Below, one piece after another: positions 1 to 22,730 of a stretch of DNA of 22,730 nt (position 1 is the first letter of the stretch; the number at the start of each line of letters is the position of its first letter). Source of the DNA: Bugula neritina (Eukaryota > Animalia > Bryozoa); assembly GCA_964035545.1 (NCBI GenBank), contig CAXIUT010000071.1:1-22730 (forward strand), given 5' to 3'. Position numbers and translations under genes: made by a program. The notes below the pieces were generated by a model that saw nothing but the letters and a program-made list of their open reading frames with translations, did no database searches and was not told the DNA's origin.

Positions 1-93
1 CCCAACCCCAACCCCAACCCCAACCCCAACCCCAACCCCAACCCCAACCCCAACCCCAACCCCAACCCCAACCCCAACCCCAACCCCAACCCC
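1..93 (+). repeat. Left telomere, (CCCCAA)n
   Basis: Perfect C4A2 repeats at the window start. This is the Tetrahymena-type ciliate telomeric repeat. Confidence 0.98.
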
Positions 94-188
94 TTAGATA
101 TTAATACAAAATAAAAGATAATATATTGGATTCTTTATATTTTATATTGATAGACGTTTTATTCGTTTCAATATGTTATATTTTTACT

Positions 189-1079
189 ATGCCACCTAAA
201 AAAACAGAACCACCCAAATAATAACCTGTAAAAGGCAATCAAGGTAAAGGTACTCTTCTACTCATGCAGGAGATCCTAAAGGACTCAATAAAAAGGAACA
301 ACCTGCCAAAAATGAAAAAGATAGTAACTTTTTATCTAAGTAGATGGTAAAAATGGTGGAAAAGGAGTCGATAAATCGATCGATAAGAAAGGAGGTAAAG
401 ATGCTGGCAAGTCACTTGATAAGAAAGACGCAGTAAAAGGAGGAGATAAAAAAGATGGAAAGGATGCTGGTAAAAAAGATGGGAAAGATGCAGGTAAAAA
501 GGACAAAAATGAGCCTTCTAAAGGAGATAAAAAAGATAATAAAAAAGATCTTTAAAGAAGCAAATCAGCAGGAAAGCTAGATCCTAAGAAAGATGCTAAA
601 GGAAAACCAGTATAAGAAAAAAGTCCAAAGGGAGGTAAAAAACTAGACTTAAAGGAGGATAAAAGTGCAAAAAATCTTAAAAGTATTGAAAAGGATGGTA
701 AAAACAAATAGTTGAGAGATTCTAAGAGTAAAGATCAAAGCAAAGGAAATGATAATAAAGGTAAAAAAGACGATAAAAATGATAAAAAAGGTACCAAAAT
801 AATAAGATAGGAAAAAACCAGAAACCTGAACCATCTAAACCAAAGAAAGAAGAAGATATTATCAAAGACAGTGGACTTCTTGAGGCATATGAGTTATTTT
901 TAAGAGCAGTTTGTAAGCATGGACTTCCTGATGGAAATGTCTATGAGTTTGCTGCTCAGCAGATCTAGAAATATGAGAGGAAGAAAAGAGCGATCGAGCT
1001 GAAGGCTAAGGCAGAGCAATAGATTGAAAGAGCAGCTAGAAAGAGAGAATAAAGGATGCATTCGATATAAAATGACTGA
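189..1079 (+). CDS. Lys/Asp/Gly-rich low-complexity protein (276 aa) with a short helical C-terminal domain; introns 250-269, 324-343, 791-810
   Basis: Open from ATG to TGA with TAR=Glu after removing three 20-nt GT-AG introns. Contains KKDGKDAG repeats. The C-terminal SGLLEAYELFLRAVCKHGLPDGNVYEFAAQQI loosely recalls RIIa/Dpy-30-type docking helices (inference). Confidence 0.8.
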
Positions 1080-1201
1080 TATTGATGATTTACTTAAGGC
1101 TACTTCCTTTGAGCCATAAATTTACTTAATCTTATGAAATAAATATATAGGATATTCGGGTAATCATCTGCTAGATATATATTTTGATATTATTTTATTA
1201 G

Positions 1202-1813
1202 ATGGTTGAGAAGTTGAGTAGTTTCGGGGAGGCATTTGTTTCATATGGTAGTTACCACTATGACACAGTGTAAAATATATTTTATTTAGTAACAAGTGGA
1301 TTCATATCTTTTGTGTTCCAATTATAGCTGCTACATTGATTAGTGGTGCAAGTTATATTCCTGTTTCTTATGAGTTTCAAGGTTATAGGATAGGAGTCGA
1401 TGTAGTTTTGATGTCAGTTGTTCTATTTTACTACTTTTCTATCAACTTTGCTTTTGGCGTATTTTCTTGATAAGTTAGATGGGGATGTTGGTATTGTTAT
1501 TGTTGGGTATTGCTGGATGGCAGACTGCTTTTCAGGGAATGTAAGAAGGACTGTTCTTGAAATGGGTGTTGGGTATTCATATTTTAAGTTGGGTTTTTCA
1601 ATTCATTGGTCATGGAGTTTTCTAAAGTATTAATTTAAAGATTTAGAACGAAAACCTGCTTTAATGGATAATTTGACACAGATCATGAATGCGCCTTTGT
1701 TTGTGGTGGTGGAATTGATGATGATGGCTGGGTATCGGACGAATTAGACTGATGAGTGGATGAAACTTATTACCAAAAGGGTTATGCAGTTTAGAGAGGG
1801 AAAAGTCAAGTGA
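1202..1813 (+). CDS. MPO1: Mpo1-like / DUF962 membrane protein (2-hydroxy fatty acid dioxygenase family), 183 aa; introns 1270-1289, 1459-1478, 1627-1646
   Basis: Family motifs YGSYHYDTVNKWIHIFCVP and [23 protein letters not shown] (the E is TAA 1623-1625), plus hydrophobic segments. Confidence 0.88.
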
Positions 1814-1973
1814 TTGATTCATCTTTTGTTCAAATATACTTACTATAAAAAGAATGAAAGTATTATGAAATGATTTAAAAAGATATTTTCAAATATTAGA
1901 GTTAATATGATAAAAAGATAATTGAAAGATCGGTTTAGATGATCATTTTTTGTTTAAAAGTGGTTGTTTCAGT

Positions 1974-2684
1974 TCATTTTATTCTTTTAATTTACTTTAA
2001 GAGATTACTTTTTATTTATGAGATATAAATAGTGCAAAAATGAATGTAAAAAGTTCTTATCATTATTTTTACTAAGTGATTACTTTATTTTCTTTTCTTA
2101 TTTTATATATTTTTATTGTTTATTTTATATTTTTTCAAATTAGATTGATCATGTTATATTTTTACATCTTAATTTTATTGTTTATTTTTAGATTATTGCA
2201 TTTATTTCCTTACTCTAGTTTTTCGTTGATTTGATAGTAGTTTATTGAAACATTCTTCAAGATTTTACTTGGAACAAACTTCGTTATCTTTGTAGAATTC
2301 TATTTGCTTTTTAAATGAGTATTTTATAAAACTTTCCTCTTACCAAAAAGTCTAACAAGTCTTATTATACAGTTAATATGCTCGATCTGGATTCTACGAC
2401 CACTGCTTGTACATGAAAAATGCATCGTTATGACTATTTTTCAAGTCATACAAAACTTTTTGAAATATTGTTAAGTTATTTAGTTCATCTTCTAATAATA
2501 CTATAAATTGAAATGATAATTATTGGCTATTTAGAAGTTATTTTTATATATAATTTTATTCTTTACCTGATTATTCTTTTTGGGAGGAATAACTTTTGTT
2601 ATTTGTAGTATATTGACTTTGATTTAAATTTTATTGTATTGATTTATTTTAAGTAGCAAAAAGATTAACAATATTTTATTCCAA
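1974..2684 (-). CDS. Hypothetical protein, apparent paralog of the upstream gene; start uncertain (TTG at 2684, first ATG only at 2414)
   Basis: TGA-free frame from 2741 to the stop at 1974-1976. The motif FQKVLYDL..FMYKQWSENPDRAYELY is shared with gene 2742-3230. Confidence 0.6.
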
Positions 2685-2741
2685 TGAATTAAGTTAAAGG
2701 TAATATTTATTTTAGATAATTAAAATAATAATAGAGGGATA

Positions 2742-3230
2742 TCATTATTTGTCAATAAGTTTTTGGTAACTATAATCGGCTAATTCAATTGAAGATGGTT
2801 TTTATTATTTTTTATTAAACCCGAAACAATTCTTTATCTTTTCCAGAAAACTTGGACCTTATTTTATTTTAGTATTTTTTGATTTGTTTTTCTTCTTGAT
2901 TACTTTTGACTCCTTTTAAGGTGACTTATCTTTTTTTTAATTTAATAAACTTAATGTCCTTTTTTATTTCCTCCAAAATGATATCAGAACCATTTAAAAA
3001 TAGCATACATGTTTTTAAATTGTACGATCATATTTTTCCTCACCTAGTTTTCTTTTTTACTCTTAAAATTGTTGTAAAACTCCTAACTGATTTACGAAAT
3101 CCATCATATCGTACAGTTTTCTAGTTCTAACTTTATTTTATTTCCAAAGTTTAAACATAAAGTTGTGACGATTACTTCCTTATTAGGCTAAATCTAGCAT
3201 GAACATTTTGAATTCTGATATACTGGCCAT
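2742..3230 (-). CDS. Hypothetical protein, 162 aa
   Basis: Intronless ATG-TGA ORF with TAR=Glu: MASISEFKMFMLDLAEEGSNRHNFMFKLWKENKVRTRKLY...YQKLIDKE*. Confidence 0.7.
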
Positions 3231-3283
3231 TCAATAAATATTATATTGATGATTTCTAAACTATTTATAAATAATCATTTTAA

Positions 3284-4121
3284 TCATTTTATTGTTATTT
3301 CCTAACGATCTGTTTACACTTTTTTAGTATTATTTGAATATTTTTTTTTTATTTATTTCATTTATACTGATGCTTTTTAATTTTTTTAAAATGTTTGAAT
3401 ATTATCTTAATTATCTGAAGTATCAGTTTATTTAGATTTCCTGAAACAGAAAGAACAACTTTAACAACAGGAAAAAACCCAGCAACAAGTTATTACCAAA
3501 CAACAATATCCTATTTCCTTGAAATCATAGTATATTTCAACAAAATACTCACAACAATTCTTCCTTCGACAACATTAAATAATAATCATTATAACTGCAA
3601 CTGCCAAAAGAGAAATAGATATTATATTTTCAATATTTTTAAGCTATTAGTCAGTCTGAAGTGTTTGGACTATCTTTGTAAGGGCTGCTAAAAGGATCAT
3701 CACGATAGGAATAATTTTAAATAAAAAGGCGCATCGATTCCCTATTTTTGTTTGGTTTTTAAGATATTTCGTGTATTTCAAAATTTTTTATCTTTGCAAT
3801 GTTTCATTCTACAGTTGTTTATCTTCTAACACTTACTACCCGATTAAATGATATTAAAATTTCAAACATTGCTTTAGATCGATTGATATTAGTTTCTTTC
3901 AAATTAATTCCATTGAGAATATAAATAATTTTCTTTTGATTCGACAAAGTCATTTCCTTGAAAGAATGTAATATGTCATCAGGTTTATAGCTTTAAACTA
4001 AACTAACTAATTCGTAATGGTTTCTTATTGACATCAATAGTGTCTAGGAAATTTGATTTCTAATTTTCTATTTTTATGGAATGGTTGGAAGTAAACGTTA
4101 TCCCGATTCTGGCTACATCAT
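3284..4121 (-). CDS. Hypothetical membrane protein (about 278 aa) with two hydrophobic helices and a Cys-rich segment; needs a +1 frame correction near 3839-3841
   Basis: MMEPESGERLLPTIP...MFEILISFNR / EEVLEDK...AFLFKIIPIVMILLAAL...IISISLLAVAVIMIIIECCRRKNCCE...CCLVITCCWVFSCCESCSFC...EITIK*. Confidence 0.65.
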
Positions 4122-4287
4122 TGTTGATAGTTGATATCTATTATAAATATTTTTATAACCTCAATTCAATCAAATAAAAAATATTTCTAAGAAAAGTAAA
4201 TTTAGGAGTATGATTTTGAAGTAAAGATATTATTGTAAATGCTTCTGATATTTTAAATATATTTAAAATCATATTTAATCAATAGAC

Positions 4288-6089
4288 ATGAAAGCTCCTG
4301 TGATGGTCATGAACACCAACTCCAAAAGATAAACCGGAAGAAAAGCACAAATAGCTAACATCCAAGCTGCAAAGGTAACTTTCCTTACCTGAAGACACTC
4401 CCTGTCTTCTCTCTTTCCTATCTTCATCATTTATTCAGGCTGTTGCTGATATTGTTACCTCCACTCTCGGCCCACAATCTATGCTCAAAATGCTTCTAGA
4501 TCCAATGGGAGGTATTGTAATGACTAATGACGGGTACTTTTGCTTTGATTTAGAAATGCCATATTGCGATAGATTGACGTTCAACATCCAGCTGCTAAGA
4601 GTGTGATTGAGTTGGCTCGTGTGCAAGATGAGGAAGTTGGAGATGGAACTACTTCTGTTATCATTGTGACTGGATAGCTTATGTTGGCTGCCCGCCCTTT
4701 TATGGAAATGAATATTCACCCCACTATTGTTGTTAGTGCTTACTACAAAGCTCTTGATTTTGCTAAAAATATCCTCAATAGCATTGCTAAACCTATCGAT
4801 ACAAACAAGGATGAGGAAGTCCTAATGGCTCTTCAAAGTTGTATTGGAACTAAGTTTGCCAGTAGATGGGGAAAGATGATTTCTAACTTGACTATCAAAG
4901 CTACTAAAACTATCATAAGAGAAGGAACTAAGAACAAACTTAACCTTGAAATCAAGAGATATGCTAGAATTGAAAAGATTCCAGGAGGAACTTTGGATGA
5001 CAGTTAGGTATTGGATGGAGTCATGGTAAATAAAGATATTACTCACCCTAGAATGAGAAGACAAATTAGAAACCCAAGAATCATCTTGTTAGATTGTCCT
5101 TTGGAATACAAGAAGGGAGAGAGTCAAACTAATATGGAATTGAAAAACTAGAATGCTATGTGTGAAGCTTTAGAACAAGAACAACAGGAAATTGCTTTTA
5201 TGTGCAATGATATTCTCAAGTGGAAGCCTGATATCGTTATTACTGAGAAAGGTGTTTCCGATTTGGCTCAACATTTCTTGCTTAAAGGAAACGTTTCATG
5301 CATTAGAAGAATCAGAAAGACTGATAACGTCAGAATCGCTAGAGTTTCTGGAGCTAAAATTGTCAATAGAGCTGAAGAAATCCAAGAATCAGATGTTGGA
5401 ACAGAATGTGGTCTTTTCGATATCAGAAAGATCGGAGATGACTACTTTTCTTTCTTTGTAGAGTGCAAGGCTCCCACTGCTTGTTCTATTTTGTTGAGAG
5501 GAGCATCAAAGGATGTCCTTAATGAGATGGAAAGAAACCTTCATGATTGTCTTGGAGTATCGAAGAATCTTTATACTGATGCTAGACTCGTTCCTGGAGG
5601 AGGAGCTGCTGAGATGGAGATTTCTGCTCGCATGAATGAAGAAGCTAACAAATACGAAGGAATTGAACAACTGCCATTCAGAGCTGGTATTTATTTAATA
5701 ACATAGTGGGATATGCTTTGGAAGTTATTCCTAAGACTTTGGCTACTAACTGCGGTATGGATGTTGTGAGAATTATCACTGAATTGAGAGCTAAGCATGC
5801 AGAAACTGGAAATGCTTCTTTCGGTATTGATGGAAACAACAAGAAGATTAGTGATATGACTGACGTTAATGTTTGGGAGCCAATAGCTGTGAAAAATCAG
5901 ATCATTAAGACTTCTGTTGAGGCTAGTTGCCTTCTTTTGAGGATTGATGACGTTGTTTCTGGAGTTAAGAGAAAGGAGAAAGAACAGAAGCCTGGTCCTT
6001 CTATGGGAGGTATGGGAGGAATGCCTGGAGGTATGGGAGGCATGGCTCCAGAAGCAATGGAAACATTTGGTGATGCAAGAGATGGATGA
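4288..6089 (+). CDS. CCT3: T-complex protein 1 subunit gamma (CCT/TRiC chaperonin), 565 aa; introns 4375-4438 (64 nt), 4534-4553, 5687-5706
   Basis: Motifs TLGPQSMLKMLLDPMGGIVMTNDGNAILRE, QDEEVGDGTTSV, YARIEKIPGG, LEYKKGESQT, ITEKGVSDLAQHFL and LLLRIDDVVSG are diagnostic of CCT gamma. Confidence 0.98.
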
Positions 6090-6203
6090 TCGTGTTACAT
6101 CAATAAATATTAAACTCATTATAGAATGTTACTAGATAATTAGTATCAATAATCTTTACAAAAGTGAAATATAATTTATTGACTACAGATAATCGAAATA
6201 ATT

Positions 6204-7227
6204 ATGAGTCGAGAAATTATTGAAGAGTAAGAACGATAAGAACGAAAAAAGAATAGACAATCATAATAAAAAACACGCAATCAAACAACTAGTAAAAAAT
6301 AAAGAGAAAATCCTTCTTAAAGAAGACCAAGACCTGAATACTAGGAATAACCATCTCATTCTTCCAGAAGATCAAGACATCAAGAATAATAACCATCCCT
6401 TTTTCAAAGAAGACCAAGACCCGAACACTAGTAGTCATCTCATTCTTCGAGAAGAGCTAGACCTGAGAAGCGATCTCCATCTCTATCTTAAAAAATGTAC
6501 ACTAATCGATATAAAGTTTATTAATGTAAAATAAAAAGCAACGATAGATGAAAAATAGAAATTACAGTAAAGCTGAGCATTATGAAAACAAAATAAAAAG
6601 AGCCAAATCAGATTTAGCTAGTAGGAGAATCAACAAGTTGGTTTAAAACCAGAAGTATTAAAGAAGGGCTTTAAGTTATTCTTATAAGAACACTTTGTAG
6701 CAGATTCAATAGGCTTGGAATAATTATTTTTTTTAGTTAAATCAAAAGTAGGCTTAGATTTTTGAGGAATTTGAGAAAGAACAAAAAAGAGAAGTTATCA
6801 AGGTAGAAAAAAAAGTAAGAAAACGTTGTAAATCTTTGCCTGCTTCTACTAGATAGATATAGAGTTTGAAAGAGAAAGAGTATTTTTTGAGGAAGAAAGG
6901 AGATTTCAAGCATTTGAGGTATGTTAAAAATCAATTGGCCTAGACAGTATATATTTTATGAGATAGGTGTTGAAAGAGAGAAGAAAGAGAGCTAAAATAA
7001 TCCAGGAATATACATATTTATAGTAAGAAAGAATAAACGTAGCTGCATCTAAGAAATATAGTGCTTTGGTGAGCAAATTAGACTAGTTCAGGAAAGATAA
7101 GGAGAGGACATATTTGCGATAGGAGAAGAAGTTGAGACAAAAATACAAGAACGCAATGCAGAAGTTGAAACATGACCAGACGATGGAATATTAGAGTGTG
7201 AAAATCAGAATGACTATTCAGTATTGA
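6204..7227 (+). CDS. Hypothetical coiled-coil protein (327 aa) with N-terminal RRPRPE..EPSHSS repeats; introns 6497-6516, 6947-6966
   Basis: Open from ATG to TGA only after removing two 20-nt introns. E/K/R-rich helical composition. Confidence 0.75.
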
Positions 7228-7274
7228 CTATATTGACTTGATTTTTATTTTAGAGGAGAATAATATATACTAGT

Positions 7275-8111
7275 ATGAATCCGGAATAAAAAATAGAGGC
7301 AATTATTGGTCGCAAAGTCTACAGCGGAAAGGTTCTATATCTTACCAAATGGCAAGGTTATCCTGAAGAAGAGGCTACTTGGGAGTCTGTCAAATTACTT
7401 AAGGAATACAAACATCTCATCAGACACTATAATCTGCAAAATAGAAATCAAATGAACAAATAAGAAGAAGATAATGAATAAGGGTAGTCTAATATGCTAG
7501 AACTTCAGAAACATGAGTCCTCTATGGTTGGCTAGGAAGAACTTAGTCAAGCAATTTTGCCGGCAAAAATTTAAAAATAAAGAAAAGACCCCCTAGAATA
7601 GGTCCAAACTGTGAAGAAAACAAGAGACTTACAGGTTGTGAGAAGAAGAGGTCGTCCTCCAAAGAGAAAATTATTCTAAAATTAGGAAGTACCCCGCCCA
7701 ATCAAGACAGAAGAGAATGTAATTGAATACAAAAACTTCTAAAATGATGTTTCTAAGTACATTCTACCACTTGTCCCTGATCAGTTCAACATTGTGAAGA
7801 AAGAAGAGGTGATAAATGATATGGGCAAAGTCAATCTGGGAAATTAGGACGAGATGATGGGAAATAAGGACGAGGTGATGGGAAATAAGGATGAGATGAA
7901 TCTAAATATAAAGGTAGAAGACGGGGAGAGCAATTTGGTCAAAATATTTTATGCTGATAAGAATGAGAAAGGAATTCTTGAATATACTATTGAGGAGAAG
8001 GGAGGGCATTTGAAGAAGCTACCATCAGAGGAGATATTTTCATTGTACCCTAGGAGTTTGGTGAGTTTCTTGGAGAGCAAATATTTCCCCAGAAAAGACA
8101 CTTTCCGTTGA
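7275..8111 (+). CDS. HP1-like protein (278 aa): N-terminal chromodomain, AT-hook, chromoshadow-like C-terminus
   Basis: Chromodomain IEAIIGRKVYSGKVLYLTKWQGYPEEEATWES; AT-hook RRRGRPPKRK at 7641-7670; C-terminal LPSEEIFSLYPRSLVSFLESK resembles the end of the HP1 chromoshadow domain. Confidence 0.85.
7839..7898 (+). repeat. Coding 21-nt tandem repeat, about 3 copies (GN[E/K]DE[M/V]M)
   Basis: ggaaattaggacgagatgatg / ggaaataaggacgaggtgatg / ggaaataaggatgagatg. Confidence 0.85.
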
Positions 8112-8135
8112 TTTTATCAGATATTGAATCATTTA

Positions 8136-9749
8136 TCAATCATATCTAATTTATAATCTTGATTTGATAATTGTATAGGGGTTGGGGTTGGGGTTGGGGT
8201 TGGGGTTGGGGTTGGGGTTGGGGTTGGGGTTGGGGTTGGGGTTGGGGTTGGGAGGGTAATATTAGGTTTATAGTCTCATTTTATTTGAAGTTTTTTTCGA
8301 AAGACTTGTATTTGGGGTATGTTTTTTTATCTCGAAGTATTGATTGTTGATTGTTTATAGAAGATTATGAGGTTTATTTGTATTTTTTGGTTTTATTTTG
8401 ATGGTTTGTGATAGTTTTAGTTTTTATTTTGAATATTTTTTTTAATATAAAAAGTGTGTTTATTATGGTAGAATTGTTTATGTTTTTAATTTATTTTTAA
8501 TTATTTTATTCTTTTTGTTTTTACTATTTGATCTCTTTCTCTTTTTTCCTTTCTTTTTAGGTTTACTTTTAGAAAAAGAACGATTGTTGATATCATAGCT
8601 ACAATCTTCTGAAAGACTAGTTTCAATGGACTATTTAAGTTTGATTTAGGTAGATTTAGTATTAAGAGTATGAAGAATGACAGTTAGAGTTATTTTTTTG
8701 GAAGATGCTATTTTGAATGGGAATTGATTTTAATACTATTTGATGAGAGTTGATGTTTCTTAGCAGATAGGTAGATATTTTTTAATAATATAAATGCTAA
8801 GTACAACATTAATTAGTATACTTTTTTAATCTATATTTTTATTACTTTATTTTTGTATATTGTAGATTTGGTTTAGTTGATGGAATGTTAAAGTATTAAT
8901 TATTTTTATTTGATTCATTTGATCTGTTTTGTTGTTTTTATTTTATTCTTCAAAAAGATTCAATTTTAGTTATGAAAGCTATCTGAAGGATATTATCTTA
9001 GACCTTTATTTGTTTTGTTTATTTGATATTTGGCTTTGATTTTGGAGCATTTCAGTGATTAATTTTTAAATTACTGACTTTTTAATAGATAGAATATTCT
9101 TTTTATTATTAAAATGCTATCTTAATTAGCAAAGTGTTATCAATTAGTCTAATTATGATTTTTACTCATTACTCACACCTTTTATTTGATTTTATCTGTT
9201 TTGAAAAGAGTAAAGAGAACGAACTAAGTCAAATATTTTTAAAACTGAAGCTAAACTGACCTAAATAGCATGAATTGATAGACTGACAGTACTGAGATAA
9301 TGATAGAATTTAACTAATTGAAACTACCAGTTCCACAAAGAGTTAAATATAGTGCCTTTCATTGTTTACTATTCTTCTGCATCCATGAAGCCTAGTTTGA
9401 TTTTTTATTATTCAATCTAATTGACTATTATGTTGACAGCTGAAAGTAATATTTAACTTGCCAGTTCTTCTTTCTTATTCTTTACTTGAATTAATGCTTT
9501 GTTATACAATATCTTTAGTTAGTTTTTCTTTATATTTCTTTTTACTACTGGATTATCTTGATGAAGAGAAGTGAGCTGTTTATGGAGATGGCTGATAGCT
9601 TCTTGCAGAGATAGGAGTTAGTTGTACTTTTGTTGGGTGAATAGACTATGGGCTCTTCTTTAGGCTTATCTGATTCGTTTGGGTATGTCAGCTGGATATT
9701 ATAGGAGGTACTTACAGGGAGAGGATTCGTAGTAGTGTAGTTATTGCAT
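8136..9749 (-). CDS. Hypothetical protein (537 aa as written) with a basic NLS-like segment; its frame runs through the internal telomeric tract
   Basis: TGA-free frame from ATG 9749 to TGA 8136-8138, ending ...SKPKKKGKKRKRS...MRLETEYYPP(NP)12YTIIKSRLEIRYD*. The 3' end is less certain because an out-of-frame TGA lies at 8276-8278. Confidence 0.65.
8178..8252 (+). repeat. Internal telomeric tract GGG(GTTGGG)12
   Basis: Perfect G4T2 repeats in the same orientation as the right telomere, with no adjoining C4A2 tract. Confidence 0.97.
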
Positions 9750-9787
9750 TCGAAGAAAGGTATAATTATAAAGAATAAAGAAAAATA

Positions 9788-12700
9788 TCATTTACCCATA
9801 GTTTATTGACTCTAAGATCTTTATGATTCTTTTAATGAAACTGTGTCTCCTATCTAGACTCCACTTTTTTATAATTTTTAAGTGAATTGTATGTTTTTAT
9901 TTTATGTTCTTTTTATCCAAGGGGCTTCTATCTTCTTTTCTATTGATTTTGGACTGAGTTCTTATAAAATAAATTATGCAGATATTGGCAACTGAAGAGA
10001 TGGTTTTGGAAAACGCGGAAAAGGAATACTAGGTCTAAGAAAGATTCTTATCTAAACTTATTATTTATTTCTCAAACTAATGGAACGATAGGGAAGATAG
10101 TTTGAAAGTAATTTTGAACAGTTGAAGCCTAGTGTTTATTTGAGATCTGGAAGACATTAATCTTGATCAAAGTTTATCTGTTAGAGTTTATTCATGGTTT
10201 CTTTGACACCGAATTTGTCTTATTTTCCTACTAGAGCTTTGAGAGCAAGGATGGCTTTGGGTTGTTAGTTAATAAGCAAAATACAAAATACCCAAATTGT
10301 ATCTAAGAAGTGCTTGCGTATTTTATTATTAACAAGTGAAGAGTTCTCTTTGCAAGTATTTAAGCAAGATACAATATTTTTATTCCACATATAATTCCAG
10401 GCAAATGATCCATTTTTGGTAGCTATCTTGTAGAAAGCAATCCTATGGAAAGCTGATATGTAAATTCATGATATTATTTTTAGATTACTAATTGAGATAC
10501 TGTCCTTCGAATGCACTTTGAATGATAGTACCTGATATTCCACCTTAACTGAACTATCCTTCATAGATAGCGATAGCCTATGACATCATTTTGGTTTAGT
10601 TGGTTTGATTTTATATTTTATTTATTGAACGGATGGCTTAGTCATATGCGCCATTCGAAAATAATATCTTTGACACCCATAAAGATATCTAGTCTTGTTT
10701 TGTTTATAGCTAGATATATTTTTGGAGATCTTAAAAACAGTTTTAAACTAGTATGTCGTTTTTACCCTTTGATTATTTCTATAAAGAATGTTCTTGTTGG
10801 TTTGTTTATTTTAAATGGACTGATTTCATTAGAACTTTTACTGAGTCTTATTAGTTATTTTTTTATTAACTTAAAAGTAAAAATGCTATGCTTCTGCCTA
10901 ATAAAATCTAAGGCTGTTTTTATTCTAGTATAAGGCCTGCACTAAACTATTTGATTGCTTCATAGTAGTTACCTAATTTGATTTAGAGGACACCTTTGAT
11001 CCATAGCCATTTCCATGAACAATCTTCTGCTACTTTTAGTGCCCGATCTAGCTACTATTTACTCTAATTCAATCTGCTCAGTAACAATAAAATCAATGAT
11101 TTAAAATAAAGAGCTAAAGGATGTGAGCCAATAACAGAGTGATAGTTTTCCATTAATTATAGAGTAGACTATAATATTTATTTGAAAGAGGCTTAATTTT
11201 ATCCTAGCTAATCTTATCTATCTTTCCCTTCTATTGCCAACTTTACTAATAGAGATACTTTATACAATAAAGGCTATACAGGTATTTTGCCATATTTATG
11301 ATAGTATAAATCAGTACAAGCACCGTATTTTGATAAGGCATCATCTTGCATCTCATTCTCTGCCATCAGTAGTCCCTAGCAAAGATATTTGTTATATGAG
11401 ATATCGGATTATCTACCGAATACGTCTTTGAGATAATTTTAGTATTATTAATAGGTATCAAGGGCTGCAAAGAAGTTGTTTTGGAAGAATTATCCGTAAG
11501 CTTTGAATAACAAAATTAAAGGATAGATAAATTATTTTTATCTGCCTACATAGAGTTACTATTATTTTTAGTTTATGTATTATGTTTGTACTCTTTGTTG
11601 ATCTTTTTTTGAATGGCTTATTATCTTAGTTCTCACTCGAGTTGACTATATTTTAGGGACTTTTCTTAAAACTGATTTAGTTGAAAAATATCTCAATTTA
11701 TTTCCTCCTTATTTCTATATTGATTTTGATATTTTGGCTTTTGCTCCAGGACTACCCACAACCAAGGCCTTTCTTATTTAAGATGTCTAGTTGTATCTTG
11801 ATTTAGGTTGTGAATTTTATCTTTTTATTTTTTGCAACTTTTTGTTATCTTCATTTCTTTTAACGTCTGTAAATATTTTAGTAAGAATTGTAACTCCTTC
11901 ATTATAGTTTGATTTGATTATATACATGAATGCCTATACTACAGTACCCCACTAGTCCATCTTTATGTTACAAATTTAACCCAACTTTACAACATTTAAA
12001 GCCTAGTAAAATTGATTGTTCTAAAGATAGAGTTGTAATAATTTTTTGTATGCTTTCTTCATCAAATTTATGTTTCCTTGAACTCGTAAAGAATATTCAA
12101 GATGAAGAAGACCTTATTATCTTTTTTATAACTTTATTTAACAACATCCTAGATAATAATAATAGTCACAACTCTTAGAATATTGTCCCTTGCCCACCTA
12201 CAATAAATAGTGATAACTTTAAGGCCATCTCTAGAGTTGATACAAACATATTCCAACTTTCAATTCCATCTAATGTCTGAGGACTTCAGTCCCTTAGTGA
12301 TGTCCTAACAGTTATATTCCTCTTAAGTATGGACCAAGGGCTTTATCTGGTTTTCCTTGAGCTCGATAGCAATCTCCAAGCGAGTGATGAGCTAGAAAGG
12401 TGGCTGTTGATTTATCGATAAGAGCTTTGAAATCTTGTTATGCTCTGTGGTAGTATTTGAGAAGGAGATAGAGTTTTCCTCGAAAGCAGATGGCTTATTC
12501 GAATCCTTAATATCTACGGATGCATTAGTTGACAATATCGAGGCTTTAAGTTACTCTTCCTTGATAGATAGTTTTTTACCCATTTTGTTGAGAGACATTG
12601 CTGATAGTAACATGGCATTAGGTTTGTTTTGATACTAATCTGCAATAATGGACAGATGGCTGAGGGCATTTTAGACTTGTCCAACTTTGAGTTCTGATAC

Positions 12701-12934
12701 TGCGCAAAGGTAGAGAGCCTAGTTGTGTCTTGGGTTATTTGAAAGGAACTGATGAAACAACTTGACTGCTTATTTGAGGTCTCCTTGGTTATTATAGATA
12801 TTTTTTGCTGAGATGAGGAGTGAGTCGTTTTCTGTCAGGAGAGAGGACGACTTTTTAGGGGAACGAGGTTCTTTTTTATCTTTGTTAGATGAGATAGCAA
12901 GAGATTTGTTTCTTTTGTGGACGTTGAAATTCAT
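9788..12934 (-). CDS. Large tetratricopeptide-repeat protein (about 1040 aa); intron 12560-12579; +1 frame discontinuity near 10259-10261
   Basis: TPR-like units such as AHHSLGDCYRAQGKPDKAL, WIKGVLEIKLGNYYEAIKEFSAGL and YNLGILYFAY. C-terminal LRPSIPFP...IEAPWIKR. Confidence 0.85.
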
Positions 12935-12995
12935 TCTATGATGTTTATTATATATGATCAAATCAAAAGGAAAATTGGATTGTTAATGTGAGAAA

Positions 12996-14167
12996 TCAAT
13001 CATTGAATTGCTTAGATTATCCGTTAGCCCATCGATATAAGTACCTACCTGATAATCTTCCCTAAGGATTGTCCAAAAACTATCCTTCAGCTCTGTCTCC
13101 TATTCCGAATTCATATAATCCTCTTTGTCTGATGACTCGGCCATCTCTAATCATCACTATTCCATCAAACTTATCTCCGTTATCGTATGTAAGGTTTCCT
13201 TTGAGTTATAGACTGTTGTTTCCATTGTAATCTGAGGTAAAATCTCCTCTGAGAAGTACTTTTCCAAATTTTATAACTCCATCTCCTCGAATACTATCAT
13301 TGTCAAAGCATCCTTCATAGACAGCTCCTTTCCAGTGATATATTCCTCTTCCATGCTTTTTACCTTTGACTAACGATCCTTAATACCTTCCCAACTCGAC
13401 ATTGTATTCATCATAATAGGTTACTTTTCCTTGTTGTAGTTCGTCTGATTGCCAGTTGCCTTCGTAGACTTGTGTATATCCATTTTATGTTTTTCTGAGT
13501 GATCCAAGTCCTTATCTATAATCTTTTTCCCAGTTCCCTACAAACTACCCATTTTTAAATGTCAACTTTCCTTTCCCACTTTTGAAATCATTAAGCCAGT
13601 ATCCAAAGTAATGTGCATTGTTGGGGTAGTAATGTAGTCCTAGTTGTGACTTTTTTCCGTTTTACCAGGCTCCATAGTAGATCATTTGTCCTTTTTAATA
13701 CTAAAATTTTCCTAGTTTTCCAATTCCATTGAACTTTCCATTGAGGAAATCACCGAGATAGATGATTTGGCTATTGGGATCATAGTTATGAAAGACGTAG
13801 ACGCCCATTCCTTCCATTTTTTTATTTTTCCACTCTCCGATATACCTATCTCCATTTCTAAAAACATAAAGTCCAAAATCGTCTTTAACAGAAGAGTGGC
13901 ATTATCCCAACTAACACTGCAAATCTTTTGTTTATCTTTATATTTTGGCAACTATCTAACACTACATTTACATTTTTATTTCATGAAGAGAAAGCTGTCG
14001 ACTTCTTACTGGAAATTGAGAGTAGGTTGTAGATATTTTTATTATTGGTTGCCTTTAAGATGACTATGTCTATCATCTGGTCGATAGGTACTGTGCACTT
14101 GTTTTAGTCCACTTATTTACTATCGTTTGAGGAGTTAGTTTCTTTGGCCTAAACTGGTTTTACTCAT
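12996..14167 (-). CDS. MORN-repeat protein, 383 aa; intron 13952-13971
   Basis: Repeated MORN units YIGEWKNKKMEGMGVY, YFGYWLNDFKVGKG, YEGSLVKGKKHGRGIYHW and YEGCFDNDSIRGDG. Confidence 0.92.
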
Positions 14168-14222
14168 GCGTTAGAGTATAATTTAATATCTCTATGATAG
14201 GTTGATGTAATAATTAGATTGA

Positions 14223-15766
14223 ATGTAAAGAGGAGGGGGATTTAATAGTCGACCTTGTAAATTTGGAGCTGATTGTCGAAAGTTAGCTACTGGAACTTGT
14301 ACTTTCTATCATCCGCCTAACCAACAACCTAACATGAATCAACCTGCCCAACACGGTCAATGGGAACAGCAAGGAAATCCTAAAGGAACTGGTTTTGGAC
14401 ATCACAAAAAAAACTAATACAACAACTACAATAATAACTACAATGGACCACCTCAAAACTATCCTAATAAATTTACTTAACCTAACCATTACCAACCTGG
14501 TCATAATCAACCTGGTCATAACCAACCGGGTCATAATCAACCGGGTCATAATCAACCGGGTCATCAAAATCCTCGATTCGGGAATGATCGACCGCCTCGT
14601 ACTGACGATCCTGTATAGCGTCAACTGTGTAAGATGTATCATTTGGGACTTGAGTGTAAATTCGGGTAGAAGTGTCGAGGTAAGCATGGTTTTTTGATAA
14701 ATAATTCATAGCTGATAAATCGATTTCAGATGATGAGAAATGTGCCTTTAGGTTTGATAACTCGATTGACTAAATTTATAAATGGAGGGAAAGAATATTT
14801 TGCTATGAGAAATGACAATACCATTAACTTCTTTCAATTCAGCTGCTAAACCAAACAACTAGCAGATGTGTTTAAATACTAGTTGCCCTGTAAAGATAAA
14901 AAATACAATTTTTACGATCACAAAAATTAAATTATTTACTTTTCTACATAAAATCCTTTAACTCATTTTGAGGATATGGGTTTTTATAACTGTTTGACTC
15001 AACAGTATTGTTTCATATAAAATTCACATGTAGGTAAGATAACAGGTATGGCTCATCTAAAATAAAATGTTCTCATTACTAGTTCTATGAATACTTAACT
15101 CAAAGTATGGAATATATCAGAAAATAACTAAATCAAGTTCTACCACTAGGCTACTTAACTCTTAAAAAGTAGTTTTAATCCTCTAAATGCCAACATTGAA
15201 CTCTACTTTGTTGATGTTAATCAAATAAATGGCATGCTAATAGTTAGTATTGGAACATCTGATGGAAGAGTCTTGTTCTTCTTAGGATAAACTCTCGAAT
15301 TTAAACAAGTTCAACTTGGTTAGCAGTACGTAACATATTTTATATCGAGGCTAAAGTATTTAAGTTGAGGTATTCGACTCGGCATGAGGTGCCTACAGCT
15401 TTGGTTCTAACCTGGAACCAACAAAAAACTTTCTCTAGCATCATGGAAGTAGATCTTGGCAATTTCCAAATACGCGCTTTGGTTGAGGTGAAGACGACTG
15501 AAGATCAACCCAAGGCAATGCTATGCCAATTTTAAATGATACATGGCTACCTGATGGTGGCCAACTTGAATGGGTTTGTTTCCATTTACGGATACCCTGA
15601 TTCTTCTCAAAAGCTGGGTGGATTTATCCATCAAAATCCAATAAGTGACATGATTGCTTCAGAACAGGAGCTGTCAACTACAAAAATAAAAATAAAAACA
15701 CTGTTTATCTTGTAAAAGAAAACAGAACAACGTTAAGGATCTCTAGGGATCTACGTGCTTAAATGA
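14223..15766 (+). CDS. CCCH zinc-finger + Q/N/P/G low-complexity + WD40-like protein (ZFWD-like), 507 aa; intron 15330-15349
   Basis: Fingers CKFGADCRKLATGTCTFYH and CKMYHLGLECKFGEKCRGKH (C-x8-C-x5-C-x3-H). WD repeat SHVGKITGMAHLKENVLITSSMNTELKVWN, followed by beta-rich repeats. Confidence 0.8.
14493..14564 (+). repeat. Coding 15-nt tandem repeat, about 5 copies (QPGHN)
   Basis: caacc[t/g]ggtcataa[t/c] units in frame within the CCCH-WD40 gene. Confidence 0.92.
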
Positions 15767-15796
15767 TCATCATCACATTAACCATCCATTCCTCAC

Positions 15797-15940
15797 ATAT
15801 TTATCACTTTATTGTTTCTTATATTTATCACTTTATTGTTTCTTATATTTATCACTTTATTGTTTCTTATATTTATCACTTTATTGTTTCTTATATTTAT
15901 CACTTTATTGTTTCTTATATTTATCACTTTATTGTTTCTT
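15797..15940 (+). repeat. Intergenic minisatellite, 6 perfect copies of a 24-nt unit
   Basis: (atatttatcactttattgtttctt)6 between the CCCH-WD40 stop and the CDC14 start. Confidence 0.97.
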
Positions 15941-15985
15941 TTGTTAGTTATACCTAATATGTTCTTTGCCTGATAAGTTAATATA

Positions 15986-17303
15986 ATGAATATAATGCTA
16001 GACAGGAATATTCCCAAGACAGTGATCCCTATTATTCCTCGTATCTTTTGTTCTATGTAGAAAAGTTCTACTACTTGGCTGATCTCAATCCTCCTAAAGA
16101 TATTCCTAATGCTTTCTTCTTTAATGTTGACAATGTACCTAGTCCTTTATTTAGGATCTAGTCTATGAAGGCTTCTTTTAAGATTTTGGACCTTTGAATC
16201 TATCTAAAATTTGGAAATATATTAACTAGGTCTCTAAGTTTTTAAGTGATCCTAAGTTCAAAAAAAATATTTTCTATCATTTTACCTCCACTCATTACAC
16301 CAAATGCACCAACTCTGCTCTTCTTGTCTGTTGCTACTTGGTACTACTTTAAATATTTAGATGGTAGCGATGAACAAGACAGCTGAGTAGGCATTTTAGC
16401 CTTTCAAGCAAGTGTAATTTAAGGCGTTTCGAGATGCAGGGTATGGTCAATGTACTTACAAATGCACAGTATTGATGTTTTTAATTAGATTTTGGATTGT
16501 CTTAAAGGTCTGCAGTATGCTATGAAGTTAGGATGGTTTAATTATAAAAAATTCGATTTGGTTGAATATGAACACTACTAGAGGATATAGAATGGAGACA
16601 TGCATTGGATAATTCCACATAAATTTGTAGCAATGAGTTCACCATACGATAAATCAAAAGATAATCATGATGTATGTCTGTTTTTATCAAGAATTCAGCT
16701 TTTAGTCCCAACGATTATATCCCTGCCTTTAAAAAACTAGGAGTTTCTGCTGTAATAAGACTTAATAATCAAACTTATGACAGCAATCAGTTCAAATAAA
16801 AGGGAGTCAGACATTATGACCTCTTCTTTACTGATGGAACTTGCCCTTCCAAAGAAATTGTTGATTAGTTCTTGAATATTGCATAAAAATAACCTGGAAT
16901 CATAGCTGTTCATTGTAAAGCTGGGCTAGGAAGGACTGGAACTCTTATTGGATGCTATGCCATTAAACATTATCATTTTAATGCTGCTGATTTTATTGGC
17001 TGGATTAGGCTTTGTCGACCTGGATCTGTTTTAGGTCCTCAGCAATTTTTTTTATTAGAAATGGAATAAAAACTTAAAATATCTGGTGATAATTCACCTC
17101 TATGGGGCGATACTAAGTTAAAATTAACTTAGTTATAAGTAGCTCAGCAGTTAAAGGTATTAATGGTGATATATTAGAGTTTAAGTATCAGTAACAAAGG
17201 GAAGATGAGTGAATAGTAGAAGGTAATCGGGTTGAAAGGGTAGAAGAATCAAGGAAACAAGTTGGTTTAAGCTAAAAAAAAGCACTAAATCAAAAAGATG
17301 TGA
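15986..17303 (+). CDS. CDC14: Dual-specificity phosphatase Cdc14 (about 405 aa); introns 16041-16060, 16135-16154, 16341-16360, 16469-16488, 16672-16691
   Basis: Motifs [41 protein letters not shown], catalytic [12 protein letters not shown] and [13 protein letters not shown]. Confidence 0.97.
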
Positions 17304-18090: not shown

Positions 18091-18129
18091 TGTGATAATT
18101 GATGATAATAATTATATTTATACTAATAA

Positions 18130-19467
18130 TCATTATGTTTTTTTTTTTATGACAGCTTCTTTTGTGATTTTATCAACGCTTTAATATCTTTACTTTCTTA
18201 TTTATTCGATGACGAGATTGAGTCGGTCGATGCATTGATCTTTTTTTCTAATGGCCTCTCTAAACAGTATTTCCTCTTTGATAAATTATTTTTATATTTC
18301 TATTAACTTTCTTTAGTACTGTTTTGAATTGTCAATAGAGTGTTCTTCAATTGATTAATTGGACGAGTTCTTTTTTATTTTGGAGCATTTACAGGTTTTT
18401 AAGAACATGTTGAGCTATTGATTTTATTATTGTAATTTGCTGACGATATCTAGTAGATTTTATATTTTTTATGTGTATTTAGCTATTTACTAATCTTATG
18501 ACTACCTGAACATAGATGATATGTAGCCTTAATGATAGTTTTTAGATGACTGCAACTTATCATTTTATAATTATAGCTATATTATTCTTTATCTCAACTT
18601 CTATAACTATTACTTCTAGTGGTTGGCTTCGTCTTCATATTGAATTATCATGTCCAAAAACTATTATATTTGATTCTTTGTGCTACTTATTTGTTAATTA
18701 TTCTACTATACGATTATTCTTATCTTATTTTAATACTCATTCTATATATTTGTTTTTGTCTGTTATTCGTGTTATACTGTTTATTTTAGATTTTATAGTT
18801 GAGATGTGAGTTGTTCTTTATCTTCTAGTAGTTTTTTAATCATATTCGAGTACTAATCGAACATGAGAGTTAGTTCTTATTTATTTTTTTTGAGGGCTAT
18901 TTATAATTTATTTTTGAGGATGAGTTTTAATTACTGTAGAGAATTTCTTAATAATTTATTTTATTTTGCCATATCATTGTTATCTTTTATTCCCATCATC
19001 TACCTCTACACCTGGCTTATTGAATTATACAGCAATTATTCTAACTAATTCTAGTTATTATTCACCATGTCTACTATCTTATTCTTATTCATTTTCTAAT
19101 ATTAGCTATTTTAGTTATTTCTTTCTTTTAATATTGGTTGTTTGAAATACTATATTTATTTTGTTCTTTTGTTATTTAAGTTGGTTTTTCTTTATTTTAG
19201 TGGACTTTAATGAAGACAAAAGTTTTATTTGTTTATTATGTTTTTGTTCTATTGCTATGGACATGCTTTCTATGATATCAATTTATCTATATAGTATTTT
19301 TTAAATGCCTTTAAATATGATTTTCTTGATTAGCTATTTTCTTTAATAAATAGATAGATACTTTTGAACTATGCGGTTGAGTTGTTTTATTTTGAGAGGG
19401 AGTCGTTGGTGTGGGCGGTGGTGCGAGAGGTGGTTGAGGTTTTTTGGTATTTTTGGAAGTAAGACAT
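18130..19467 (-). CDS. Hypothetical coiled-coil protein, 445 aa
   Basis: Intronless ATG-TGA frame with TAR=Glu. E/K/N-rich heptad-like composition. Confidence 0.75.
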
Positions 19468-19565: not shown

Positions 19566-21385
19566 ATGAGTGTGAAACTACCTATCATCAAAAAATAAAC
19601 CATCCCGAACGATTCATCTATCATCAATGAAAATTAGTCTTTTAATATTGTAAATCCTCCTTCGTAAAACCATCCTGAAGAATAAGATTATTAAAATAAT
19701 GCTGAATTTTAGTAGATTGAAGAATCTGCTCCTCAGCAACCCGTATAATCAATAACTGTACTTAAGTCGAGAGCAGAACCGATTGAAAACGAGTTGAGAG
19801 TGGAAGTAGAGATGAAGAAAGAAGGAGGCGTACAAGTTTAACCTGATAAAAAGTCAAAATTGTAAGAATTAGAGGAAATATATAACTAGAAGTAAGTGAT
19901 AATAGATTTAGATTAAAGTAGACCTCTCAGTTGAGGTAGAGAGTAAACTAAAAGAAGAAAGATCTTAAAAGTATTGGAGATAAAGTGGATAAAGATTTGA
20001 ATAAAAGTTTATTGAAAGCAACTAAAACTAATACAGTCAATATTCGAGATATTTTTTCATCAACTCCAAAGATAATGAGTCAGAAAGGAAGTCTATTAAA
20101 TGAAGAATTGAAAAAGATGCGATTGGCTATTAAAAAAATAAAGATAGATATCCAGAAAGTCAATGAGGGGATGTTAGATCCAGTATCCCAGATGAATTAA
20201 GAACGGGGAGCAGAATTAAAAACTCGAATAAGGAAAACTGATTTTGATTTAAAGGTTTAGGAGAATTAGAAGAGTATGCTTGAAGAATAGATATAGCGGG
20301 GAGGGAGAGATATCAATGATTAGTAGTAAAAGATGAAAGCAGAAGACATTAGTAGAATGAGACAGCAACTTGGATAGCTTCAGAACAATATTAAGTAATA
20401 GAAGTTAAAAATATATCAGTTATAAAAGAAAGATATATTCTTGATGTAAAAAGCTCAATATATTCAAGAAATAGACGGACATAAATATACTAAAAGAAAC
20501 AAAATATCATAAAGTTAGAAGTAGAAGTTGTAGCAGTAAATAAAACAGCTAATATCTGAGATAAACGATACTATGGATGAGAGAAATAAAACATAATCTT
20601 AAAAGAAACAATTAACAAAACACTTGATAGGTGAGGCTTCATCGATGTAGACTAAAAATTGGTAGTTATGTAACAAGTTGAGAGAAATTGATGCGTATTT
20701 GCTTCAGTATTACTAGAAGAAGACAAGGAGGAAGGAGGTGAGACCTTTGTAGAAGTCAATAGATGTGATAGAGAAGTCGGTATCAGGTACGATATAGATG
20801 CATAATACTACTATTAATGAGAATTTGAATAAGAGTAAGTTATCATAGAATGATAAGAATATAAGAGGAGTTGAAACACTAGTTGAGAAGAAGAGATCAT
20901 ATGAATTTGGTTCTAGATAGTTAATTTAAAACGAAATAAATATGTCTGACTAATTTCTAGGTCCAAAGATAAACATAAAAAGCATTACAATAAGATGCGA
21001 TAAATCTAAAATATACAGTATATCTGCTAGATATTTGAATAGTTATCAAAACGAGGTGAATGGATTTACAATAGGATCAAAATCAATACCCTAGACAGCA
21101 TAGACATTATAGCTAAAGTTGATAAAGTAAGAGGTGATAAATTATGTTCATACTGGTTATTCATAGTAGAAAAGTATAATATTTTTATTATTGGTGACAT
21201 CTTAGGGGAAGTAGTTGAAGTGGGGGAATAAATAAAATCATGCTAAAAGTTAACAAAAACATATCAAAAGGTATTAATCGAGCTATATTAAATGTAAAAT
21301 GATCTAATTCTAACAATAATAAGATAAGTTTTTATCCTTTTTGGCTGGCTTTACTTTAGTTACCACTTATCTCACAGCTAAATGA
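19566..21385 (+). CDS. Coiled-coil protein with a C-terminal jacalin-like beta-prism domain, 599 aa; intron 19892-19911
   Basis: Long E/K helical region, then IKSITIRCDKSKIYSISARY...EEVINYVHTGYSEEKSIIFLLLVTSEGKELKWG...LAGF. The strand pattern resembles jacalin domains (by eye). Confidence 0.7.
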
Positions 21386-21427
21386 TTTTTTATATCTTAT
21401 GGTTCATAATAATTAAGGGAATACTCA

Positions 21428-22636: not shown

Positions 22637-22730
22637 TTGGGGTTGGGGTTGGGGTTGGGGTTGGGGTTGGGGTTGGGGTTGGGGTTGGGGTTGGGGTTGG
22701 GGTTGGGGTTGGGGTTGGGTTGGGGTTGGG
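22637..22730 (+). repeat. Right telomere, (TTGGGG)n
   Basis: G4T2 repeats to the window end, with one G3T2 variant near 22717. Confidence 0.98.

Follow-up and report, generated by a model that had tools for sequence, protein, structure and literature searches.

An internal telomeric tract in a ciliate somatic chromosome most likely marks an alternative telomere-addition site

The window, i.e., the whole stretch of DNA analysed here (22,730 nucleotides), is an entire somatic chromosome of a ciliate and has a telomere at both ends. The CCT-gamma gene of the window (4555-6089, plus strand) contains four in-frame TAA/TAG codons, which align mostly with glutamate in its homologues, and the sequence supports a peritrich-type code in which TAR encodes Glu and TGA is the sole stop. 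A 20-nt intron is present in this gene at 5687-5706. Four sequencing runs from three studies contain part of the words sampled from the window (fractions: X1, 0.96; X2, 0.79; X3, 0.59; and X4, 0.48) and none of the four is recorded as RNA. The features that bear on the internal telomeric tract are as follows.

1-93: left chromosome-end telomere, C4A2 as shown and (GGGGTT)15GGG on the G strand; 93 nt, 15.5 repeats
7275-8111, plus strand: chromodomain (HP1-like) gene, last of the genes in the left block, with its stop codon TGA at 8109-8111
8112-8177: spacer of 66 nt between the stop of the chromodomain gene and the tract; ORF g1 ends within it on the minus strand, with its last 13 codons and its TGA (8136-8138)
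8178-8252, plus strand: internal telomeric tract, (GGGGTT)12GGG; 75 nt, 12.5 repeats, perfect
8253-8257, plus strand: irregular G-rich bases, A-GGG-T, just past the tract
8136-9749, minus strand: ORF g1, free of TGA with TAA/TAG read as Glu, which crosses the tract as (NP)12
8253-8915, minus strand: 3' third of ORF g1, about 660 nt or about 220 codons; minus-strand composition 51% A and 5.4% G
14223-15368, plus strand: CCCH zinc-finger-like gene of the right block, with a homologue in the related species R1
22639-22730: right chromosome-end telomere, G4T2, 15.5 repeats minus one G near the tip; 92 nt

The chromodomain gene matched the Pfam Chromo domain at 7290-7460 (E 1.1e-12), and Pfam detected no chromoshadow domain in it. 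Its homologue in a relative lies on the minus strand of contig L024 (8914-8005). Short, tandem, coding-like repeats were seen at two places: the CCCH gene carries (PGHNQ)n at 14460-14560 (plus strand), and a minus-strand ORF called with translation table 11 (15793-16017) has a recurring NNKVINIR unit.

The initial annotation gave the letters and position of the tract correctly, with TATA on its left and A-GGG-TAAT on its right; the right junction is a telomere repeat that runs into AGGGTAATATTAGG. No such tract arose in 100 shuffles, and the only other telomeric tracts in the window are those at the two chromosome ends. The G strand of the internal tract points to the right, the same direction as that of the right-end telomere, and, as the initial annotation also observed, no C4A2 partner was found next to it. 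The end of a telomere-bearing transposon was considered as a source of the tract and rejected, as there is neither a partner tract nor an inverted repeat.

The internal tract has the repeat unit of the chromosome's own telomeres, present 12 times plus GGG compared to 15 times plus GGG at the ends. All three tracts open with GGGG, immediately preceded by an A/T base, and close in GGG. The DNA preceding the three tracts was compared and no common motif was seen. At 75 nt vs. 93 and 92 nt, the internal tract is exactly three repeats shorter than the terminal telomeres and falls outside their length class; the shortfall might reflect the difference between duplex and G-overhang length or the way reads were handled. 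The unit from 1 to 8252 is capped on both sides, by C4A2 at its left end and G4T2 at its right end, and thus resembles a complete chromosome of 8.25 kb. If such an isoform exists, the 66-nt spacer at 8112-8177 would be its subtelomere or trailer.

The G-rich bases just past the tract deserve separate consideration. GGG has a frequency of about 0.005 per position on the plus strand, and a GGG so near the tract is expected by chance in about 1-2% of cases. The A-GGG-T could be a native G-rich seed, microhomology at a junction or a final repeat laden with errors. The right-end telomere itself contains an error near its tip (GGGTT), and a garbled repeat of this kind would be consistent with a consensus built from read tails. 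The position of the GGG, one base past the tract, hints at a homology-guided junction, which would fit a real rejoining equally well.

The initial annotation described a minus-strand ORF with no TGA ahead of the tract and a stop at 8136-8138, and a frame scan bore this out. With TGA as the sole stop, the frame stays open between 10166 and the TGA at 8136-8138 and has a Met at 9749, and the C-terminus reads YYPP(NP)12YTIIKSRL-E-IRYD before the stop. The distance of 24 nt between this stop and that of the chromodomain gene was likewise confirmed; the other two convergent spacers in the window measure 39 nt (18091-18129) and 42 nt (21386-21427). The tract had further been called frame-preserving. 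The frame is indeed kept, but this is uninformative, since the frame survives any insert of complete 6-nt repeats and any replacement of equal length. Removal of 72 nt does leave YYPPYT, as had been calculated, but this arithmetic is not evidence that an empty site exists.

Whether the frame around the tract is translated was evaluated by a codon-usage score for which nine other ORFs of the window served as the training set. The score preferred the g1 frame only from 9749 to about 9075. For 8253-8915, the scores of the three frames were -7.4, -9.4 and -7.9, and no frame was preferred. With G at only 5.4% on the minus strand, TGA is rare in this segment, so a long open frame is unsurprising there; the segment represents a Lys/Asn-rich tail of very low complexity or else non-coding DNA that lacks an earlier stop. 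The absence of a coding signal around the tract for about 660 nt means that nothing suggests selection on the NP repeat. No canonical 20-nt intron that would shift the g1 frame to the TGA at 8276-8278 was found on the minus strand of 8253-9690. A 25-nt intron candidate at 8821-8797 would end g1 at that TGA, but its length is atypical. The case for a coding tract is weak given that hexamers keep the frame, the last 220 or so codons show no frame preference and the repeats are perfect.

Relatives of the window were reached through a CCT-gamma search, which gave contigs of at least two related species (R1, comprising L023-L026, and R2). The CCT-gamma matches came from other species only, with amino-acid identities of at most 95%. 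One such protein, P0125 (in the cluster of P0003), is a peritrich-like CCT-gamma fragment that NCBI lists under a Bdellovibrionales metagenome-assembled genome, with the label hypothetical protein; evidently, ciliate contigs contaminate some bacterial bins.

Translated comparison showed that the chromodomain gene of R1 lies on the minus strand of its contig and that the homologue of the CCCH gene starts about 90 nt past its stop. R1 keeps the chromodomain gene together with homologues of 14600-15694, 18140-19341 and 19849-21073 in the order and orientation of the window, and has no counterpart of 8112-14222 between the chromodomain and CCCH genes. In the window, this segment is 6.1 kb long and holds three minus-strand genes. 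The MORN-like gene of the window (12996-14072) is convergent in both R1 and R2 and lies there right after CCT-gamma. Gene order around the tract differs from that of the two related species at every junction (compared with L024 6466-11448 and L013 9174-11824), which places the tract at an evolutionary synteny breakpoint.

The conserved linkage in R1 indicates that the two blocks belong to one locus, since a join of unrelated chromosomes would not reproduce the gene order, and a random chimera of two unrelated chromosomes is unlikely on these grounds. The adjacency in R1 skips 8112-14222 and thus does not show 8177 and 8253 as direct neighbours. Sequence comparison detected no homologue of g1 or g2 on the contigs of the related species; for g1, the comparison covered 37 related loci including the rest of the R1 scaffold. 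Nor did any of the approximately 37 contigs of related species contain an internal G4T2 tract.

Other database searches with parts of the locus gave no matches. Exact look-up of the proteins of three window ORFs (7854-8111, 5158-5706 and 4681-5004) found none on record. Word searches with the ORF over the tract plus the right flank (8171-8350) and with the tail of the chromodomain gene had no match. A right-flank 24-mer was absent from metagenome, genome and viral contigs, a left-side 24-mer was absent from genome contigs, and a protein-guided scan of metagenomes was also negative. By these searches, the organism itself is absent from the collections that were covered.

The tract is best read as a telomere cap because it is oriented like a true telomere and starts and ends in the same register as one, because 1-8252 is capped at both ends and because the repeat is undecayed. 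Most likely, as judged from these sequence features, it marks a telomere-addition site at 8177/8178. We consider it somewhat probable that this site gives rise to an isoform of about 8.2 kb, that an assembly artefact placed the cap inside the longer contig and that (NP)12 is a product of the assembly. In the macronucleus of this peritrich-type ciliate, the locus would then exist in at least two lengths: the long chromosome, about 22.7 kb, and a short form. The short form (1-8177 plus telomere) would arise where the DNA breaks at 8177/8178, 66 nt past the chromodomain gene, and gains a telomere de novo, and the 75-nt tract would be its cap. Assembly or consensus building would have put this cap over, or into, the native sequence of the long form, in which case the tract would not be physically internal and (NP)12 would not be made.

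Both the existence of the short isoform and the origin of the internal position in assembly are what we infer from this evidence. Telomere tails ought to be clipped during a standard consensus step, which counts against an artefact and makes its exact mechanism a guess. The three-repeat shortfall and the G-triplet past the tract are not explained by an embedded cap. The initial annotation had offered, as its alternative, a fragmentation site yielding 1-8252 that was merged into the contig by a chimeric read or by assembly. The fragmentation site fits better than the insertion it had put first, whereas a chimeric read of unrelated chromosomes is opposed by the conserved linkage.

The first of the competing explanations takes the tract to be physically internal, the result of a programmed or accidental break at TATAGGG that was extended by telomerase and then sealed by end-joining, perhaps via GGG microhomology. 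The telomere-length scar left behind would add (NP)12 to the tail of the g1 protein if the ORF is real. The flanks do belong to one conserved locus, the ORF keeps its frame and ends 24 nt short of the convergent gene, G-triplets stand on either side of the junction (GGG-A-GGG, with the chance of about 1-2% given above), and perfect repeats fit a recent somatic event. Yet preservation of the frame is automatic for multiples of a hexamer, the tract closes in the GGG register of real telomeres, and, as a matter of general knowledge, capped telomeres usually resist end-joining. We regard this origin as unlikely. Its wider form, in which programmed or spontaneous breaks are extended by telomerase to a defined telomere length and re-ligated to a neighbour, leaving co-oriented, frame-neutral scars across the somatic genome and some of them in reading frames, is doubtful to a similar degree.

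A laboratory chimera would account for a tract that is one-sided, of telomere length and in the register of a natural end. Here the end of a finished 8.25-kb chromosome would have been joined to a fragment of neighbouring or overlapping DNA, by ligation or by template switching in whole-genome amplification, and the assembler would have accepted the read; template switching would be in keeping with the GGG at the join. The runs that contain words of the window are small (about 300-680 million letters), and in a different study the DNA for another peritrich genome was amplified with REPLI-g (PMC12411067). Against such an event, a partner joined at random would hardly ever contain the genes conserved next to the chromodomain gene, and the ORF remains in frame over the join; we judge it rather improbable. 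Highly improbable is a germline-encoded, inherited interstitial telomeric sequence translated within g1, for which the passage of the ORF through the tract can be cited, since the twelve repeats are perfect and show no decay, and there is no coding signal around the tract, no g1 homologue among the examined relatives and a start and end register that is that of somatic telomeres.

Nergadze et al., in 2004 and 2007, reportedly attributed short interstitial telomeric sequences of vertebrates to telomerase acting during double-strand-break repair, and the reported mechanism is the one proposed in the initial annotation: telomerase adds repeats at a break, end-joining seals it and the flanks stay intact. 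Unlike the tract in the window, the vertebrate tracts are said to be germline events that decay over time and usually consist of a few repeats. We know of no in-frame coding insert of this vertebrate type in a somatic chromosome of a ciliate. In the Tetrahymena micronucleus, Cherry and Blackburn are said to have described, in 1985, internal C4A2 tracts at the ends of Tel-1 elements. These reportedly share with the window the same repeat unit at non-terminal positions in a ciliate genome, but differ in that they are confined to the germline, linked to transposon-like elements and eliminated from the macronucleus.

For Oxytricha, which differs in having nanochromosomes with C4A4 telomeres of fixed short length, we are aware of no report of caps within consensus sequence. 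Alternative fragmentation and chromosome isoforms are described in Oxytricha, where one germline locus gives longer and shorter telomere-capped somatic chromosomes, much as is proposed here (PMC3558436, PMC6937825). The minichromosomal macronuclear genome of Blepharisma stoltei has alternative telomere addition sites (ATASs) inside contigs, and, as is proposed here, telomere-bearing molecules whose ends fall inside longer contigs give nested isoforms in a gene-dense somatic genome with tiny introns (PMC9942806). Unlike the present tract, the ATASs of B. stoltei were seen as telomere-ending reads mapped inside contigs, and the repeat was not reported in the contig sequence; its telomere unit, CCCTAACA, and its ciliate class also differ (PMC9942806). 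Paramecium shows telomere healing and heterogeneous chromosome ends, with de novo addition of G4T2-type telomeres at internal positions of macronuclear scaffolds, but its telomeres are a mixture of G4T2 and G3T3, and telomere-anchored reads were used to find the sites (PMC13076228).

Chromosome isoforms that arise by alternative telomere addition are a known kind of ciliate biology (PMC9942806). If instead the tract is physically internal, processing of the somatic genome would regularly seal repeats made by telomerase into chromosomes, reading frames included, and this would be new in ciliates. Should the tract be an embedded cap, as we favour, 8177/8178 would be a real alternative chromosome end in a little-studied group of ciliates with small chromosomes. 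The gene models of the assembly that run over such tracts, (NP)12 included, would then be off by about 25 residues, and internal telomeres of this kind would need to be masked ahead of annotation.
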